From Eutreptiella sp. 'Long Island Sound 2002' (lineage: Eukaryota; Protista; Euglenida): a DNA stretch of 64,000 nt. Positions 3,926-30,713 of the stretch are shown piece by piece. Below the pieces are notes generated by a model, which saw only the letters and a program-made list of their open reading frames with translations, was not told the DNA's origin and ran no database searches. The stretch spans positions 28,334,001 through 28,398,000 of the forward strand of contig OZ038378.1 in NCBI GenBank assembly GCA_964036045.1. The letters are read 5' to 3'. Each line of letters opens with the position of its first letter. The stretch's first letter is position 1. A program made the translations under genes and the position numbers.

Positions 3926-5789
3926 GTTTTGCAGCATGTCCTCGTTGAGGCAACCTGTAGCTGTCATGCCCCTTGGTGCGCCCCTGCGAAGCCCCTCACT
4001 TCACCCTTGCGCAGCCCCACGCTGCGCCCGTGCACAGCCCCGCACTACGCCCCTACGCAGCCCCACACTGTGCCCCATTGCGGCTCCTCATGGTGCGCCC
4101 CTGCGCTAGGCCACGCCGCACCCCTGTTCCTGCGCAGACCTGCACTATGCCGTAGCGCAGCCACACACGTTACGTCCCTCGGTAGCCCCGCAGTGCGCCC
4201 CTACGCAGCCCCACATGGCCCCCTTGCGCGGCCTCGCGCCGCGCTCCTGTGCCACCCTGCATTACGCCCCAGCGTGGCCGCGCACTGCGCCCTTGCGCAG
4301 CCATACGGCGTGCTCATGCGCCCCCCCACGCTACACCCGGGCACCGCCCCACGGTGCGCCCCTGTGCAGCCACACACTGCATCCTTGCGCTAACCCGTGC
4401 TCCGCCCGTGTGCAGCCACACGCTTCGCCCTTGCCGCTTTGCGTTGCACCCTTGCGCAGCCCCACGGTACACCCCTGCGCAGCCCCACACTTTGCCCTGT
4501 GCAGCCACACGCTGCACCCTTGTGCGTCCCAGTGCTGCGCCTCTTGGCCGCCTTACGGTGTGCCCTTTCTCAGGCCCACGCCGCGCCCCTGTCCATGCGC
4601 AGCCGCGCACTGCGCCCCAGCGTAGCCACACACGTTGCGCCCCTGCACAACCCCGCACTGCGCTTTTGCACGGCCTCGCGCCGCGCTCTTGCGCGGCCAC
4701 GCACTGCGCCCCTGCTCAGCCACATGCCGTGCTCCTACGCGGCCCCACACTACACCCTTACGTTGCGCCACGCTGCGCCCTTGCCCAGCCCCACACTGTG
4801 CCTGTGTCAAGCCTCACATTGCGTCCCTACGCCGCCCCACGCTGTGCCCCTAGGTAGCCACACGCTGCACCCTTGCGCAAACCCGTACTGTGCCCTTGTG
4901 AAGCCACACACTACGCCCTTGCGCCGCCTCGCGCTACTCCCCTACGCCCCTATGCAGCACCACACTACACCCCTGTGCCCCTATCCAACCACACGCTGCA
5001 CCCCTATGCGATCCCGTGCTAGCGCCCCTGCACCGCTCCACGGTGCGCCCCTGCGCAGCCCCACACTGCGCCCATGTGCCGCCCCATGCCGCGCCCTTGG
5101 GCGACCCCGCGCTCCGCAACTGCGTTGCCTCTCATTGCGCTACAGCGCAGCCCCATGCTACGCCCCTGTGCAGCCCCAGGCCGCGCCCTTGCGCCGCCTC
5201 ACGTTGCGCCCTTGCGCAACCACACACTACACCCCTACGCAACCCCACAAGTCGCCCCTGAGCACACACTGCGCCCCTGCACATCCCCACGCCGCGCCCG
5301 TGCGCCGCCTCACGCAATGCCCTTGCGCAGCTCCACATTGCGGCCCTGCGCAGCCCCACACTGCGCCCCTGTGCAGCCCCAAGCTGCCCCCTGCGCGACC
5401 TCGCACTGCGCCTATATGCAGCCACATGCTCCGCCCCTGGGCAGCTCCACGCTGCGCCCACCCGCAGCCCTGCGATGTGCCCTTGTCGCTCGCAGCCACA
5501 CGCTTCGCTCTTGCGCGGCCCCATTGTCCGCCCCTATCCCTGCCCGGCCCCACGCTTCGCCACTGCGTAGTCTTGCGATGTGCCACTGTCCTTGCACAGC
5601 GACGCGCTGCGCCCCTGCACGGCCCCGTGGTGCGCCCCAGCGGAGCCCCACGCCGCGTCCCTGCGCAGCCCCAAGCTGAGCCCTTGCGCAACCCCGCACT
5701 GGCCCCTTTCCCCGCACGGCCCCGCGCTACGCCCCTACGTAGCCCCGTCTTGTGCCCTTGTTCCTACATAGCCACACCCAGCGAACCCC

Positions 5790-5990
5790 CCTCCCCCCGC
5801 CTCGGCAGCGCGACACTAGCATCCTCGTGGTGTGGCACCAGTCGCATAATGGCGTTGCCGGAAGCTTGTGTTCACGTGTCCCCGCTCACCTTGCACCCCA
5901 CGCTAAGCACCCACCGGTTGCCAACCACCCCTGGGTGACGCGCTGGTGGCGTTTTCGGTACGCCAAGGGCCTGTGGTGAGCTTTCCCCGT
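5790..5990. repeat. ~200-bp 'head' unit, copy 2
   Basis: Diverged homologue of 20-213. Confidence 0.75.
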
Positions 5991-7559
5991 AGCCCTCCGC
6001 TCACCCTGCGTAGTCTCACATTGTGCCCCATTACGGCCCCACGCTGCGCCCCAGTGCTGCCGCCTGCTGTGGCCCTGTGCAGCAGCACGCTGTGTTCCGG
6101 CGTAGCCGCCCGGTGTGACCCCGCACAGCCACGCGTTGTGTTCCTACGCAGCCACACGGTGCGCCCTTGAGTTCCTGCACAGTCCCATACTGTGCCCCCG
6201 CACACTAGTGCGTTGTGCCCCTGCACAGTGCCACGCTGGGCCCCAACGTAGCTACACGCTATGTTTCTGTGCGGCCACACGATGCGCCCCTCCGCCCCCC
6301 CACGTGGCGTCCCTGTGCAGCCCCACACTGTGCCCCTGCACAGCCCCACGCTGCCCCCTTGCGCCACCCCACACTCTGCCCCTTTTCCTACGCAGCACGG
6401 CATTGTGTCCCTGCACAGCCCCACTCTGCGCCCTTGCGCAACCCCACATCGTGCCTTTGCGGAGCCCCACACCGCACCCCTATGCAGCCACGCACTGCGC
6501 CGGAGTCCCTACACAGCCACACATTGCGCCCCTGCGCATCCCCACGCTTCACCCCTGCGCAATCCCATGCCGCCCCCCTGCGTAGCCGCACGCTACGCCC
6601 CTTCCCGTGCACAGCCACCCGCTGCGCCCCTGTGCAGCCCCAGACTGCGCTCCTACGCAGCCCTTCGCCGCGCCCCCGCGTAGCTCCACGCTTCTTTCGT
6701 GTGCAACACCACATTGCGCCGCGACGTTCCCCCTTGCCCCTGCACGGCTCCATGCTCTACTCCTGTGCAGCCATGCGCTGCGCCCCTTCGCAGCCCCACG
6801 GTGCACGGCTGTGCAGCCCCGAGCCCTACCCCTGTCCCTGCGCGGGCCCACGTGTTGTGTCCCTGCGTAGCCACCCGTTGCGCTCCTACGCAGTCCAACA
6901 CTGCGCCCCTGCACTATATGGCATTCTGCCTCTACGCTGGCCCATGCTACGCCCTTGCGCGGTCCCACGCAGCGCCCCCACACGGGCTCACACTGCCCCT
7001 TGTTGCGCTCCTCCTTTATGACCCCACGCTGCGCCGCTGCGCGGACCCACACTGTGCCCCAACTCATCCTTGCGTTGTTGTCCTGCGCAGCCCTATGCGG
7101 TGCCCTTGCGCACCCACATGAGCGGTCCCCCTCCCCACCAAGAAAGGCAACACCACCACACCAACGCGCAGCACCCCCCCCCCCCTTCACACGAAACTTT
7201 TCCGGCTAGTGACAGCCCCCTGTGGCGCGGGCTGTGCTGTCACTCGCCCGCTTCGGCCCACCCTGACGGGACGGAGTAAACGGCGCTATGGATCGTTGGG
7301 GGCGATTCGTTCTGGCAGCCCCTCTTCGGCTTTGCCGTCGCCTGGGGCGGGCCAATCAGAATCTAGCATCCAAAATCCCCCCACCACCTCAAATTGCCCC
7401 ACCTGGACCCCCCCTCCCTCCCACCAACCCTCCGGGCCGCCCATCCTTTAGCCCCCCCCCCCCCCGCCGCCCACTTTGGCCCACTTCTACTCGGGGTTGG
7501 GGGGGGGTTGCATACAAAAGCGAGGAGACGGCCCCCAGGTGATGCACTATTTTCTCCAT

Positions 7560-12524: not shown

Positions 12525-12554
12525 CACTTTCTGAGTGTCTATTTTATTTTTTCG
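12525..12554 (+). other. Euglenid spliced-leader (SL) exon sequence embedded in genomic DNA
   Basis: CACTTTCTGAGTGTCTATTTTATTTTTTCG vs the Euglena SL as recalled, ACTTTCTGAGTGTCTATTTTTTTTCG. It is followed by ATTGAC rather than the GT expected in an SL RNA gene. Confidence 0.85.
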
Positions 12555-23544: not shown

Positions 23545-24933
23545 TTATAGGTCCTCCTTCAGTTGGGAGATATCTCCCATAGACCCTTGCTTCAACGGCC
23601 ATGAGCGGCGGGTAGGCCTAGCGTAGCATAGCTTTTTCGCCACCAATCTCCTCTTGGAGTCCACGTACTCTCTCAGCCTGGATCGGGGGTCCAACTCCTC
23701 GTCCAGGGGCTCCTCTCCCCTCATGGAGAGTAGGGGTTTCAGTGGGGCAGCGTACTCGCCGTTCTCCACTTCCTCCACACACGTCTGCACGAAGAAGGCG
23801 TCGTGCTCAGTCTCGTCATCAGAGTGTATAGAGCTGGGTAGCTCGGATAGCCCAAACTCTGAGACTACATCAGGATTAGATACACGGCAAGGGGAGTTGG
23901 GGGCAACAGTGTCAGACACGACGTACTCGTCTCCCCCAGGAGTAGTCTCCACGGCGTCTCGAGGTCGTAGTTGATTTTTCAGGACGTCCAGGGTGTAGCC
24001 GCTGCTCTCACGTTGAATTTCCTGGACCATAGCAGGGTCCAGATCTTCGCAGGGCACTGGAGCTAGGCTGCCGTCCACCACGCTTAGCATGCTCCCCCAT
24101 CAAGGTTTCCCGATGGGCGTCTTGCGGCCCAGAGGCACGTAGATGGCGTCATCCGGCAGCTGGATGGAGGTGAGTGTTAGCTTGTCCAATAGAGTACGCC
24201 AGTACTCATTTCCCCCATGGGCTCCCCAATCGGGAGAGCACAGGACCATACGGGAACGTTCCAGGGCCACCTTGGTCAGGACCTTCCCCAGTTCACTGAA
24301 TCTTGGGTTCCCGTAGGCCATCCCGAAAGAGGGCCAGTAAAATTTATAGCAGCAATTTTTCCCCTTGCTGCAGTAGAGGTCCAGGACATGTTCCTTGTCG
24401 CTGGCGAATAGCTCCACGTTCAGGTCTTCCCGGGAGTATCCCAACTCCTTCAGACCTTGGTCCAAGACATCCCCCAGGAGCTGATAGTCCTCAGTTTCGG
24501 AGGCGACCATCATGGTTGAGGGCTCCCTCTTGCATACCCTCAGGTAGCTAGACGTGTGCTCAGACTGCTCCAGAGGTACAAATTCCCAGCCGTCACCATG
24601 GTCCACTTGGAGGACGTAGGGTGCTTGCAGTGTGAGGGATAGGATCTGGGAGTGCTCGACGAAGAAGTCGGTCCCCAGTACAAAGTCGAAGGCTTCGGTG
24701 TCCATCACGTAGAACCGATGGGCAATGCTTCTAGAACCCACAGGCACTTCGACCTCACAGTCCCCACAACTGTGCACCATATGCCCATCTCCCATGCGGA
24801 TGGCTGCGGTAGGCAAGATGTTCTTCAGGTCCCCACAAGGTAAAATTTTCTTGGCCACAATAGATATAGTGGCCCCAGTATCCAGTACCCCCAGGTATTC
24901 ACGTCCCCCAAGACGGATACGTACCCAGAACAC
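23545..24933 (-). pseudogene. pol: Gypsy pol: aspartic protease, Dam-like methyltransferase domain and spacer
   Basis: LDTGATISIV (protease); VELFAS...YCS...YWP...YGNPRF..LGKVLTKV....MVLCSPDW....YW..LL (DIRS-type MT); frameshift near 24095. Confidence 0.8.
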
Positions 24934-25421: not shown

Positions 25422-25953
25422 GTGCAAGGATCGTCAGCGATCCACCTGCGACGGCTTGTGTACACCGTCACCAAACAACACATCGAAGACGACCGAGAAC
25501 TAGTGGTGCTACTACTTGACCAGTCCAACGCGTATGGTCAGCTTGACAGAATCGGCATGATGCACCTGGTAGAGCATGACCCCGGCTTCCACACGACATG
25601 GGCAGAGGCCTTGTACCTCTATGCCAAGCTCCTCGTGTTCATCCTCACGCCGTATGGACTGTCGGAGGGATACACCATAAGAGAAGGCGTTATACAAGGA
25701 GGGGGCATGGACCCCATCCATTTCTTATGGTTCACCATGCTCCTGGCGGTGTGGTGCGGTTGGCACACCACAGGGGTAGCCCTGCGCACCACGATGGGGA
25801 TTCAGCAGCTCAGGCCGCAGGCGGTACTGGACAACGTCACCATGTTCGCAGCGAGTCCAGGACGTGTCATTCAAGACGCCGACGGATTGCTGAAGCACGG
25901 GGGGCGCATGAACCTGGTGATTAACGCAGACAAATTGGCGCTGCTGCACTACT
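25422..25953 (+). pseudogene. LINE RT core
   Basis: LLDQSNAYGQL, GVIQGGGMDP, AVLDNV (degenerate xxDD), INADK. Confidence 0.88.
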
Positions 25954-26132
25954 TGGGATGCAGCGTTCTAGGGCGTGGTGCGGAACCCCCCCAATTTTGG
26001 GTGTTGTTAATATGGTTGGAACCCGGAATTTCACATGTTACATGGGTGCACTATGATGCAACAATGTGCCTTCCATGTTTCGTTTGCTCGATATTGCCCG
26101 TTTTGCACTTTTTGCGATTTGATCTTTGTGTG

Positions 26133-26699
26133 CTCTAACTAGTTATCGCGGGGTTAGAACGGGGTTAGAGCACTAGTTATCGCGTGGGTTATCGCGCGAT
26201 AACCTAGTTATCGCGGGGGTTATCGCGGGGGTTATCGCGCGATAACTAGTTATCGCGTGGGTTATCGCGTGGGTTATCGCGCTTCATTTTATGTTTCCCC
26301 TTTTCGCTTTAGCTCTCAACTGACTGGCAACTGACTTGACTGATTTGAGAGGCACCCTATCCAAATCATCCAAAAGACTGTGTGACTGATTTGAATTTGT
26401 GATTGTGGCGCCATGTACCCCGTGCCTGCACATTGTTGACATCTCCAAGGTTTCCTGGGTGCAAAATCAACGTTTGTGAAGGTTTTAGGGTGCCCAACGC
26501 TTGCTCTAACACCACCAGTTAGTGCGCACTAACCCCTGCTCTAACTAGTTATCGCGGGGGTTATCGCGCTCTAACTGGGTGCTCTAACTAGTTATCGCGG
26601 GGGGTTATCGCGCTCTAACTAGTTATCGCGGGGGGTTATCGCGGGGGTTATCGCGCGATAACCTAGTTATCGCGGGGGTTATCGCGTGGGTTATCGCGT
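26133..26699. repeat. Left subterminal array: ~19 copies of GTTATCGCG in two blocks, plus GCTCTAAC/GTTAGA motifs
   Basis: Counted directly in 26142-26282 and 26548-26698; several copies form GTTATCGCGCGATAAC palindromes. Confidence 0.9.
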
Positions 26700-26762
26700 G
26701 TGTTTTTTGGGCCCTTGCTTCAAAACCCTCCCTCATTTCGCGCCCAGGTCCTCTTATTCTTC

Positions 26763-28421
26763 ATGGACAATGCTGTCAATGAGGCCCTGCGGGCTCTCAA
26801 CACAGCCAACCTGCGGCGGTACACCGATCTGCAGTGCCCCAAGGCCCGGCGGCGGCGTTTGAAGGCGGTTCAGCGGCTGGTGCGAGTTCTATTGGGTGAC
26901 CCAGACGTCGTGTGTGGCACCAACACCAAAGGCGAAGTTTGTTTAAGTGGTGGGGCGTGCACTGCCCTGTCTGGCCCACTTGGCGGCCATCTTGCATTAA
27001 CAGCTCAGGAGCATGAGGCCCTGAGCATGCTACGCATGGCATGCAGCATGCATCTCTCCCAACGGGCCCTTTTGCGAATGCCCCGCCGTTGCACACAACG
27101 GGACCTAAGGACCGTTCGGCAACGGATCATGCCCTACTTTCCCCAAACCACCATTGTAAAGTCTACCACAGGCCGCAATAGGGCAGCTGCCCATGTGCCT
27201 TTGCAATCAATTGTGCAAAATGCAATATCTATGGCCCGAGTTATTGGGAAACCCCCCCCTAGTGGCGTTGCCATTATTGTTATTTCAGTTGATGCGACTT
27301 CCTTGTGGAAGGCATCCTCTACCCGTGCCGATGTATGGGTTAATGTATGGGGGGGGGCAAAATATGCTTCGAAGGTGAAGCTATGGGCCTCATGGTTTTG
27401 CATGGATGGCGGGGATGAACAGGCTTTTTTGAGAAGCCTGGACATCTCCGCCAACCTCAACCAAGAGGTGAGGGATGTGGAAGAGGACGTTGTCCTCTTT
27501 CAAAACCAATTTTTGACTTGCACTGTCATTTTGACAGGGGATGGGAAGGGGATGCAAGCAATGGGGGGGGCTGGGTCTAAGTGTTGGTTGTGCAAAGACC
27601 CCAATGGGATTGTTGAGCAAATGGGGGTGGAGTCCACCTCAAGATGGGGGTCATTCTTGAGAAGTGTGACCCCTGATAGGCGGCCGGGGGACTACCAACA
27701 TGCAGCATGCCGCATTCTAAACGGCATTGCAAAGCGCATTGAGACCACCCTCCAGGCCCTCCCCCCTAGTACCCCTGGTAAGGCCCAAGCTCTTGCAGCT
27801 TTGCAGGCCTTCAAACAAGCCCTCAAGGATGAGACCGCAGGCATCCCTCTTAGGGAACGCCTCCCTTCGGCCTCGAGGGCCACAGAAAAAGATTTCGATC
27901 TAACCAGCACCAAAGTTTTCCTAACCTCCCCCCCCTTCCAAAGGCAATTTGTGGAATGCCTCAAAGAGCATGTCCCCACAGTGAGGACCCCTGGGGGACC
28001 TATGTTATGGGTTGTTGTGCATGTCATGGTGAAATGCATTGAGGGTTTGTATGAGCTTTGGAGGGTGAGGGAGTTGTACACTCTAACCCAAGTGGAACGC
28101 CACCGTGCGTTGACCACAAAATTTTCAAAAGCGTGGGGAGACTCAGGTTGGTCCCCCACCAGGTGGATCCATTGGTGCTTGGCACATTCCACCTTTTTTG
28201 CCGAGAAATGGAGGAACATTTTTCAGTTTTCCTCCATCCCAACGGAGTATCGGCATGGGCCTTACAAGAGGAGGCTCAAAAATTGTTTTAAGGGTTGGTC
28301 TTTGGTGAGGCCAAGTATGTCCCTCCGCCACATGCACCATTGCATGTCCATGAACGCCCTGGAGCAAGGGCTTTTGGGACTGGAGGCAGCCAAGGCCTCA
28401 GACATTGATGACTTTGTATGA
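26763..28421 (+). CDS. RAG1/Transib-like transposase, 552 aa from the ATG at 26763
   Basis: ISVDAT (D), GGDE, LTGDGK (D), CWLC, GDYQH, IHWCLAH (Hx4H), SSIPTEYRH (E, 20 aa after the last His as in RAG1). Confidence 0.85.
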   Translation: MDNAVNEALRALNTANLRRYTDLQCPKARRRRLKAVQRLVRVLLGDPDVVCGTNTKGEVCLSGGACTALSGPLGGHLALTAQEHEALSMLRMACSMHLSQRALLRMPRRCTQRDLRTVRQRIMPYFPQTTIVKSTTGRNRAAAHVPLQSIVQNAISMARVIGKPPPSGVAIIVISVDATSLWKASSTRADVWVNVWGGAKYASKVKLWASWFCMDGGDEQAFLRSLDISANLNQEVRDVEEDVVLFQNQFLTCTVILTGDGKGMQAMGGAGSKCWLCKDPNGIVEQMGVESTSRWGSFLRSVTPDRRPGDYQHAACRILNGIAKRIETTLQALPPSTPGKAQALAALQAFKQALKDETAGIPLRERLPSASRATEKDFDLTSTKVFLTSPPFQRQFVECLKEHVPTVRTPGGPMLWVVVHVMVKCIEGLYELWRVRELYTLTQVERHRALTTKFSKAWGDSGWSPTRWIHWCLAHSTFFAEKWRNIFQFSSIPTEYRHGPYKRRLKNCFKGWSLVRPSMSLRHMHHCMSMNALEQGLLGLEAAKASDIDDFV

Positions 28422-28489
28422 AAAACGACCACAGATGCTTTGTGCCAAGTGTTTTGTGTTGTTTGTCCTAGTGAGGGATGGAGGAGGGG

Positions 28490-28612
28490 TGCGCGATAAC
28501 TACCCGCGATAACTGCGCGATAACTGAGTTATCGCGCGATAACTAGCGCGATAACTAGTTAGAGCAAGGTGCTCTAACTGCGTTCTAACTCTGTTCTAAC
28601 TGTGCTCTAACT
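28490..28612. repeat. Right subterminal array: ~5 inverted CGCGATAAC copies plus G(C/T)TCTAAC motifs
   Basis: Direct reading; mirror orientation to the left array. Confidence 0.9.
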
Positions 28613-28804
28613 CTTTGACCCCCCCCCCAAAAACCACCCCCATGATGCGGGTTATGTGGGGAAAGAAAGGGGATGGGGGGTTTTTGAGGGTGCTGAATCC
28701 ATTTTTTTAGGTGGTTTGCCCCAAAATTGAGGGTAGGTGGGTGTTCCAGAAATTGCGTTCTAACTAGGGGTTCCGCACCACGCCCTAGAACGCTGCATCC
28801 CACT

Positions 28805-30713
28805 GTTTGGGCAGGAACGGCATGCGGTGCATGCCGTTGCGACATCAAATTGGAGGGTACACAGTGGAAGCCAGGCGCAACGCAGAGTACGTGCGGCACC
28901 GGGAGGAGATGTAAATTGGTTCGGCACGGGGAGGGAAGAATTGGCACACGTACGGCGCCTCAGCTGGAGAGTCCAAGCACGGGCCAAGCCGAGGACGCCT
29001 AGCGTAAGCGTCCTCAGAGTGCTGGTGGAGGGAATTGTGATGAATGCATGGGTCATCCGGCGTGTCGTATAATTGCTAGATGATGCGCTGGGCTAGCAGC
29101 CTAGACCGGTGGGTGTAACGGCCGTGGGGGCGGCAGTCGCTCGGCTGCACAGAGCGGTTCTCGACCTGCCCAATAAGACGCCTTGGCGCTTCATATTTGG
29201 GGCCGAACACCTAGCCATGGCGCACCCTGCGGTCAGCTTGTGGATCACGTTCCCGTTGAAGCTTACCATAGCGGCCAATTCGGCACACGGCCAAACAGGA
29301 CGGGCTGTGCGGTGGGAAGTGGTCAGACACGTGCAGGCAACACACACCCAACCACAAAGCCCCGTGACGCACAGCGAATATGACATCCTTGGGCGCTGGT
29401 GCGCGCAAGTGGGATGGAGCGTCCGCGTGGTCCGGGATGAGAGTCACGGAGAACGGTGGACGTACGATGGCCGGCCCCTGCTGGCACGGCAACCACTGCT
29501 ATTGGTGGGGGACTTCAGTGCACATGCTAGCCAGCATGAATGGGGCATGGGGGCAATACTGGCGGCGTTACAAGGTGACGTGCTATGGGAGGCAAGGGCG
29601 TGGATGCACGTGCAAGGGGCCTCCACCACACTGCTCGAGGCGACCATTCTGCACGAAGCGGCGCGGGCGGTTCTGGAGACCACGGAAGGGCGCGAAGCTT
29701 GGCCGACATTGTAACGGTTTGCTGACAACCGGGCGGCGAAAGTGCGCCTGCAGCACGGCCCAATGGCCACGGCATGTGTGGAGCTGCTACAACGAGTTGA
29801 AGCAGCCGAAGAGTTGCACGTGGCAAGAAATTGGACCGTCGGCTGGAGTGCAGCGCAGCATGACACGGGGGCGACGGATGTCGTCTCAATGGTGAACAAG
29901 CGGGCGGATGAGATCAGCAACCTCGCTCGGGTGGCAAAGCGGAACGATCACAGGTGGCACGTACCGCAATCTTGGATTGACCGTGACACCCTCTTTTGGA
30001 AGCAGGGCGATGCCATCATCTGTGACGTGTGGCCAATGGCCAAGAGGGACTTCGTGTGGGGCCCCAAGAACAAGGTACACAACGTGGAGAATGTGCACCC
30101 AGTGCCTGTGCCGCCGGAGAGGCAACCAGACAAGCAACTCCGAACAACGTGGGAGACGGTGAGCCCGCTACTCCCCAGGGATGCGGTCATGGCCAAGCTA
30201 TCGCGGGCATGCCAGGACCTCACGCAGTTTCAGGCGGATGGAGAAGGATCAGGAGAGTGTGCCCGTTGCGGCATGCACGTGGCAGTACAACGCCATCATC
30301 TCATCCATGAGTGCCCAGTGGTCCAGCGCCATTGGCGAGCGGCCGTTGATGCAGTGGCGGCGCTCATACAAAAACAACTAAAAGCACGGGCCCGCCTGCT
30401 GCGGGCGTGGCGAGGAGTTCTGCTGGAGCGGCCGCCCACGGTGCCAGTGGTGTACGTGGGCTGGACGCAACCGTGGGACCACGGCCTCACAAGGCCGGCA
30501 GGGGCAGCAGTGTTGCCAGTATGTGTTCACATTGTGCCATCTCAGGCAGTCGTCCAGGCGCTGCAAAGGTGTATCCGCACCGACGCCAGTCTGCTCTTAG
30601 TGCATTGCATGCGTGCAGTGTACCGTGTACAGGGCATGGAGGAATGGACGGCTAAAGACGTCTTGGCCGTCCAGCGACTGCTGCCATGGGCCGGAGTGAC
30701 GTGGCGGCTGTAG
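28805..30713 (+). pseudogene. LINE RT thumb, RNase H and CCHC zinc knuckle
   Basis: YVRH(L)GGDVNWFG; LVGDFSAH / TTLLEATIL / FADNRAA / WSAAQHDTG..VNKRADEIS (RNase H D-E-D-D); CARCGMHVAVQRHHLIHEC. Confidence 0.85.

Follow-up and report, generated by a model that had tools for sequence, protein, structure and literature searches.

A 2849-bp DNA transposon lies at positions 25954-28802 of the stretch analysed here, a 64,000-nucleotide window of contig OZ038378.1 (28,334,001 to 28,398,000, forward strand) from the euglenid Eutreptiella sp. 'Long Island Sound 2002'. The element is very probably a recent, internally deleted copy from an unnamed lineage of the already described EnSpm/Mirage/Chapaev/Transib/Plavaka (CMCT) clan, and not a member of Transib proper. 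The transposase has a RAG1-like fold, and a full-length parent of the copy carries three further genes that the window copy has lost.

Borders and target site of the window copy

The terminal inverted repeats (TIRs) of the element, written 5'-TGGGATGCAGCG...GGAACCCC, are complementary at 36/36 positions, and neither the rest of the window nor 100 shuffles gave a further match to this 36-bp sequence. Between the TIRs there is a single long open reading frame (ORF) at 26700-28421, which encodes 573 aa when counted from a GTG. Because the relatives that are 31-38% identical all begin at the methionine (ATG) of 26763, we define the transposase as a protein of 552 aa. An earlier note on this DNA, written from the letters and their translations, had described perfect 36-bp TIRs around an uninterrupted 552-aa ORF, a 2-bp CT duplication and ends unlike those of Transib. 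All of this agrees with what we see, both in the window copy and in the other copies, where neither CAC termini nor a 5-bp target-site duplication (TSD) appeared.

Beside the window copy, nine further distinct element loci were sampled from one ENA assembly (sampled sequences carry L numbers below). Four of these loci were also taken with longer flanks and have two L numbers each. The termini read 5'-TGGGATG...CATCCCA-3' in all copies, and the 2-bp flanks are paired at exactly shared outer borders in 6/6 complete copies: CT in the window, AT in L003, TG in L004, L009 and L013 (4644-8202), and TT in L015. The chance of six matching dinucleotide pairs is about (1/16)^6. The duplicated sequence varies from copy to copy and is not fixed. 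A 3-bp ACT duplication around an element ending in ...CCC would also suit the window copy; it was rejected because the other copies do not show it. When single ends are included (window, L001-L009, L013-L015), TG/CA accounts for 5/10 target dinucleotides against about 1.3 expected, so that a weak TG/CA target preference is possible in this small sample.

An empty site also supports these borders. A contig of sequencing run X1 joins window position 25950 directly to 28802 with a single CT, at a depth of 37.7; in the same run, the flank contigs that end at the element borders reach 65 and 84. The X1 sample may be polymorphic or heterozygous for the insertion, or there may be a paralogue of the host repeat that the element has not interrupted; the element borders and the 2-bp duplication are confirmed under either origin. 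Excising the element together with one CT restores the host frame (...LLHYCLGRNG...IGGYTV...YVRH...stop). The earlier note had called this the frame of a long interspersed nuclear element (LINE). The continuity of the frame after excision was borne out, whereas the LINE or reverse transcriptase identity was not confirmed, as no Pfam family matched the interrupted ORF.

A multi-gene parent element

The parent copy (L009:4943-12040) is 7098 bp long, has the same TIRs, is flanked by a TG duplication and holds four ORFs on one strand. In alignment, at 99.4% identity, the window element consists of parent positions 1-366, a 16-nt filler and parent positions 4632-7098, and it has lost 4265 bp, three ORFs included. 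What the window contains is a multi-gene element shortened by an internal deletion, not the whole element. L003 and L004 also carry internal deletions, which differ from that of the window copy. We ascribe the window deletion to interrupted gap repair after cut-and-paste excision, a process that typically leaves internal deletions filled with extra DNA.

The gene order of the parent is not peculiar to one locus. In the long forms L005, L006, L008, L009 and L015, the transposase gene is preceded by ORFs of about 680, 400 and 210 aa. We also considered the 680-aa ORF as a transposase, which is ruled out, as it is PhyH-like while the 552-aa ORF has the DDE fold. The second and third ORFs (Table 1) could yield a read-through product or be two separate genes, judging from their arrangement; a similar pair (about 400 and 210 aa) recurs in L005, L007 and L015. 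No Pfam family matched ORF3, and a single-sequence model of ORF2 (pLDDT 52) is too poor to judge its N-terminal half. The window copy contains no RAG2-like (kelch propeller) gene; in the parent, ORF1 is PhyH-like and the N-terminal half of ORF2 is poorly modelled. As far as the models and matches allow a judgement, none of the additional parental genes resembles RAG2. The earlier descriptions of the element as intact-looking and as lacking a RAG2-like gene hold for the window copy but are incomplete, as this copy derives from a four-ORF element by internal deletion.

The transposase and its predicted fold

Numbered on the 552-aa protein (add 21 for the 573-aa ORF), the transposase motifs are D177 (VDAT), G216GDE, D260 (TGDGK), C274/C277, D310xxH313, H470/H475 and E495, all at the positions that the earlier note had listed. 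C274xxC277 and H470xxxxH475 are located between D260 and E495. In an alignment of 19 relatives (28-94% identity) C274, C277, D310, H313, H475 and E495 are invariant, and D177, D260 and H470 are nearly so.

An AlphaFold2 model built from a 67-sequence alignment reached a pLDDT of 91.7 and a pTM of 0.83. D177 lies on the strand formed by residues 169-181, D260 comes immediately after strand 249-258, and helix 492-496 contains E495; in the model this arrangement is that of a classical RNase H/DDE enzyme. The predicted Cys2/His2 zinc site bridges the insertion domain. When this model was compared with the PDB by Foldseek, the top 49 matches (E 6e-11 to 1e-5) were all RAG1, BbRAGL or HzTransib, followed by the P element transposase (E 1e-3). 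VIA-align gave the same order, with Z 22.9 for RAG1 (model 82-550 to RAG1 460-1007), Z 21.3 for HzTransib (model 81-545 to HzTransib 21-478), Z 15.0 for the P element, Z 9.4 for ISCth4 and Z 8.9 for Hermes. The model thus gives good support to a DDE enzyme with the RAG1/Transib core fold, comprising a dimerisation and DNA-binding domain (DDBD), pre-RNase H, RNase H, ZnC2/ZnH2 and a C-terminal domain (CTD), and the RAG1 likeness that had been claimed from motifs is recovered at the level of predicted structure.

Broader structural collections give a more even picture. Among AlphaFold DB clusters, the 28 best matches are unnamed or otherwise-named entries (E 1e-13 to 2e-9), several of which also cover the N-terminal 80 residues omitted by most RAG1 alignments, and the first RAG1-named entry ranks 29th. 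ESM Atlas clusters score much alike, with TM 0.63-0.68 for unnamed, RAG1, DUF1280 and Plavaka clusters. Language-model feature scores place RAG1, DUF1280, Plavaka and Transposase_21 clusters about equally near (0.89-0.93), with RAG1 at 0.93 slightly above DUF1280 and Plavaka at 0.90-0.91. Leaving RAG1 families aside, DUF1280, Plavaka and Transposase_21 are the named clusters closest to the transposase.

Sequence comparison supplied many relatives and no family name. The Pfam hmmscan placed the transposase in no family at E up to 10, and found nothing relevant in overlapping gene calls or in the 19 relatives. Neither phmmer nor a family-profile hmmsearch of PDB sequences (E up to 10) returned a RAG1 or HzTransib chain. 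An exhaustive search found 542 transposase relatives, and full-length relatives at 31-38% identity occur on short contigs from other ENA assemblies, public runs (Logan) and JGI metagenomes. The word-seeded and exhaustive searches listed relatives of the query only, and a word-seeded profile search listed same-assembly copies only. The suggestion that the lineage was undescribed is in keeping with this outcome, as no named family was matched by sequence.

Probable placement in the CMCT clan

The RAG1 residues D600/D708/E962 and C727/C730/H937/H942 are correctly numbered in the earlier note (PMC4914335), and the CxxC, Hx4H and 20-residue His-to-Glu spacings of the euglenid transposase do match them. 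As a specific argument for RAG1 this match loses its force, since the CxxC, the Hx4H and the His-to-Glu spacing are found throughout the CMCT clan (Kojima 2025, PMC12730594). The ends are likewise less aberrant than the word non-canonical had implied. The clan makes TSDs of 2-5 bp (Kojima 2025, PMC12730594), and most of its elements have 5'-CA..TG-3' termini, but PlavakaA combines 2-bp TSDs with 5'-TGT..ACA-3' termini, and ESTA, a group of EnSpm-like transposons with TA TSDs whose similarity reaches only the RAG1 level and which carry a dioxygenase gene, also falls within this range (PMC12730594). The transposase described here has the CxxC/Hx4H motifs of the clan, and its 2-bp TSD lies within the clan range. 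Kapitonov and Koonin even counted Chapaev within the Transib superfamily in 2015 (PMC4411706).

We reject Transib proper because its 5-bp TSD and its CAC-type ends were both tested and neither was found. All six complete copies and the empty-site contig show 2 bp and not the 5 bp of Transib, and the termini are TGGGATG instead of the Transib-type 5'-CAC, which resembles the heptamer of a recombination signal sequence (RSS). By sequence, too, no RAG1/Transib core was recognised by Pfam, phmmer or the family profile.

Subterminal repeats and a proposed transposition mechanism

The 9-mer GTTATCGCG occurs at 28 sites inside the window element and at none in the remaining 61 kb of the window. It is accompanied by GCTCTAAC-type motifs in subterminal blocks, and it runs mainly forward in the two 5' blocks and mainly in reverse in the 3' block. 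In the parent, ORF1, ORF2 and the transposase gene are each preceded by a spacer with a similar GTTATCGCG/GCTCTAAC block. More distant relatives (L010, 38% identical; L011; L012) have the same repeat layout with different short motifs. A conserved layout with diverged motifs is the pattern expected of co-evolving transposase-binding sites, and the arrays are presumed, from their sequence, to be such sites. It is possible that the blocks act as promoter or regulatory modules as well.

Complete TIR pairs were not found in the three contigs of divergent relatives, L010-L012. A likely right end is present in one of them (L010:2938-2973, a Logan contig, relative P0073); it is 36 nt long and reads, from the tip, TGGGGTG...GGAACCCC. 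This likely end and the window TIR have in common an outer TGGGRTG and the inner GGAACCCC, and the subterminal motif of L010 is AGGAACCC.

These features allow a mechanism to be proposed. The transposase would bind the putative sites in the GTTATCGCG/GCTCTAAC arrays together with the TIR tips and pair the two ends. D177, D260 and E495 would then cut the element out, probably through a hairpin on the flanking DNA by analogy with RAG1 and Transib. The free 3'-OH ends would attack the target 2 bp apart, so that repair of the stagger would duplicate 2 bp of nearly any sequence. Deletion derivatives with filler DNA, such as the window copy, would arise when gap repair after excision is interrupted. 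The transposase may be sufficient without the lost parental genes.

Age, abundance and activity

The window copy is 99.4-99.9% identical in DNA sequence to other copies and differs from three of them at 3/2156 nucleotides, and its transposase has the majority residue wherever the sampled copies differ. The ratio of nonsynonymous to synonymous polymorphism (pN/pS) among intact copies, 0.15-0.57, also fits a young family. One ENA assembly contains hundreds of proteins that are 74-100% identical to the transposase, the two largest clusters having 275 and 174 members, and the summed contig depth of the element in run X1 is very high. The sequence was also present in several independent runs of three organisms, as well as in estuary metagenomes. 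Estuary metatranscriptome contigs span the transposase ORF without splice joints. Recent activity is likely, and the element is probably still active; the earlier view of it as young and plausibly active sits well with its copy number, its 99.4-99.9% identity and its consensus-like, intact ORF.

Points against this placement and alternative readings

Several observations count against a recent CMCT-clan copy as the explanation. The termini are of the TG..CA type, not the CA..TG of the clan majority, a departure that PlavakaA, within the clan, shares. No sequence-level tie to a named family was found, so that clan membership rests on fold, motifs and language-model likeness. To our knowledge the PDB holds no CMC-type transposase and no CMC structure has been solved, and RAG1 therefore tops the PDB matches by default. 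A paralogous host repeat, in place of an allele, could be the source of the empty-site contig, and the metatranscriptome contigs could stem from DNA carry-over of a very high-copy repeat. The copies compared for pN/pS were picked for intact ORFs, which biases the ratio downward; values involving L002 are invalid because of compensating indels in sequences compared without alignment.

A small probability also remains that the family is sister to Transib/RAG1. In its full form, which we regard as quite unlikely, this proposal makes the family and its 31-38% identical relatives a deep branch sister to Transib plus RAG1, outside the CMC families, and still active, with a 552-aa enzyme that works alone. 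If it were true, Discoba would supply a minimal, RAG2-independent RAG1-fold transposase that gives direct access to the change of stagger from 5 to 2 bp and to the ancestral way in which ends are recognised. We hold it to be very unlikely that the family is a genuine Transib/RAG-like lineage, nearest among protists to the ancestor of RAG1, with its stagger shifted from 5 to 2 bp and its ends changed. The best solved-structure matches are indeed RAG1 and HzTransib across the whole core, the RAG1 clusters lead by features, and the D-D-E, CxxC, Hx4H and 20-residue His-to-Glu spacings equal those of RAG1. These observations weigh less once it is considered that the PDB lacks a CMC transposase, that 28 AlphaFold DB entries outrank the first RAG1 and that TM-scores are equal for RAG1, DUF1280 and Plavaka clusters. 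The 5-bp TSD, the CAC termini and a RAG1/Transib sequence match are all absent, and the motifs are clan-wide (PMC12730594).

The CMCT-clan placement leaves room for doubt on whether the short copy can move by itself. It may be effectively non-autonomous, with mobility that needs the dioxygenase, the coiled-coil proteins or both in trans from full-length copies; we consider this possible, if on balance unlikely. The multi-ORF architecture recurs in the sampled long copies, the repeat blocks that precede ORF1, ORF2 and the transposase gene suggest co-regulation, and the window copy, L003 and L004 each have their own deletion junction, with no sign of self-amplification in any of them. Yet at least three independent deletion derivatives all keep an intact transposase gene, RAG1-fold/CMC-type DDE enzymes hold the whole catalytic machinery, and HzTransib works alone. 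It is highly improbable that the copy is a dead relic or an assembly artefact without current activity. Truncated ORFs are common among the family members in the assembly, but perfect TIRs, an intact ORF with majority residues and so few differences from three other copies speak for a functional element, as do the empty-site form in an independent run and the occurrence of the sequence in several independent runs, estuary metagenomes among them.

Coordinates and genomic surroundings

The features of the window copy and of its parent are collected in Table 1.

Table 1. Features of the window element and of the parent copy. Positions are those of the window unless prefixed with L009.
Feature	Position	Strand	Basis or remark
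Interrupted host ORF, upstream part	25422..25951	+	resumes at 28805-28914 after removal of the element and one CT
Left TSD copy, CT	25952..25953	.	single CT in the empty-site contig of run X1
Left 36-bp TIR, 5'-TGGGATG start	25954..25989	+	identical alignment border in 6 complete copies
5' subterminal repeat block 1, GTTATCGCG and GCTCTAAC arrays, mainly forward; presumed transposase-binding sites	26133..26282	+	
Internal-deletion junction, 16-nt filler between parent 366 and 4632	26320..26335	+	alignment to parent L009:4943-12040
Repeat block 2, same 9-mers, immediately upstream of the transposase gene	26504..26698	+	
Transposase gene, 552 aa and stop, uninterrupted, RAG1-like predicted fold	26763..28421	+	DDE = D177, D260, E495; CxxC/Hx4H zinc site
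3' subterminal repeat block, same 9-mers, mainly opposite in orientation to the 5' blocks	28492..28613	-	
Right 36-bp TIR, ...CATCCCA-3' end	28767..28802	-	
Right TSD copy, CT	28803..28804	.	
Parent repeat block	L009:5161-5270		parent positions 219-328
Parent repeat block	L009:7478-7672		parent positions 2536-2730
Parent repeat block	L009:9825-9936		parent positions 4883-4994
Parent ORF1, 680 aa			weak PhyH / 2-oxoglutarate (2OG)-Fe(II) oxygenase matches
Parent ORF2, 411 aa	L009:7662-8897		coiled coil at residues 254-391 (C-terminal)
Parent ORF3, 202 aa	L009:8901-9509		same frame as ORF2, one stop codon between
Parent ORF4, 552 aa			transposase gene

The element family inserts into other repeats. 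The window element sits in a nest of retroelement remains, and just upstream of the insertion, on the opposite strand, an ORF (24100-24933, -) has the retroviral-type aspartic protease motif LDTGATISIV. The neighbour of the L001 copy is a piggyBac-type transposase gene (PF13843; L001:5640-6962, -), and that of the L009 copy is a Ty3-type pol with reverse transcriptase, RNase H, integrase and chromodomain (L009:13868-18745, -). An Rfam scan of the window gave no match. Window positions 12528-12551 (+) match a euglenid spliced-leader sequence with 3 mismatches at the 3' end, which is consistent with the euglenid-type label of this DNA.

Significance

Euglenid genomes are very large and full of repeats, and their DNA transposons are poorly annotated. 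The present analysis indicates that RAG1-fold, very probably CMCT-clan, cut-and-paste transposons are abundant in a euglenid and probably still moving there. The window contributes a deletion derivative that has cleanly kept the transposase gene alone and for which an empty site serves as a control. A compact 552-aa transposase close to the consensus, with defined ends and candidate binding sites is an attractive substrate for assays, and it is tempting to think of it as a possible genetic tool for euglenids. The family would add one more lineage in which a RAG1-like enzyme makes 2-bp duplications, and its parent element would be a CMCT transposon with a 2OG/Fe(II) dioxygenase outside fungi. 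The relevance to the origin of RAG that the earlier note had seen is weak, because nothing sets the element nearer to RAG1 than to the CMC families. The element alone leaves the picture of that origin unchanged, and its interest is moderate and mainly for transposon specialists.

Comparison with known systems

The likeness to RAG1, BbRAGL and HzTransib extends over the whole predicted core fold, from the dimerisation and DNA-binding domain to the C-terminal domain (Z 21-23 over about 420 aligned residues). Shared as well are the Cys2/His2 zinc site, the distance of 20 residues from His to Glu and a DDE triad carried by an RNase H fold. In contrast, identity is only 11-13%, there is no match at the level of hidden Markov models, and the TSD is 2 bp, not 5. 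The TIRs are perfect over 36 bp and lack a heptamer/nonamer-like 12/23 asymmetry, and the element has long subterminal 9-mer arrays and, in the window copy, no RAG2-like partner.

ESTA resembles the element in its 2-bp TSD, in a transposase seen only through RAG1-level remote similarity and, as far as the parent is concerned, in a gene of the 2OG/Fe(II) dioxygenase type. It differs in that the TSDs here are CT, AT, TG, TG, TG and TT, not TA; the cargo is PhyH-like (by weak matches), not TET/JBP-like; and the window copy has lost the dioxygenase gene. PlavakaA shares the 2-bp TSD, termini of the TG..CA type and the C(2)C and H(3-4)H motifs, and Plavaka clusters are among the nearest named look-alikes (feature score 0.90, TM 0.65). 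Here, however, the termini are TGG..CCA against TGT..ACA, with 2/3 bases matching, the host is a euglenid and not a fungus, and the Plavaka family PF18759 of Pfam was not matched.

Mirage makes 2-bp TSDs, and the nematode DUF1280 family may be linked to it. Besides TSD length, the likeness lies in the DUF1280 clusters, which are the best named look-alikes other than RAG1 (score 0.91, TM 0.63). It is a likeness of features and fold only, as hmmscan gave no match to PF06918. EnSpm/CACTA elements differ from the euglenid element in their 3-bp TSD and CACTA termini, and the latter has no match to PF02992. They have in common with it inverted arrays of short subterminal repeats, autonomous elements with several genes and frequent internal-deletion derivatives, and the best Atlas feature match has Transposase_21 clusters among its structural neighbours.

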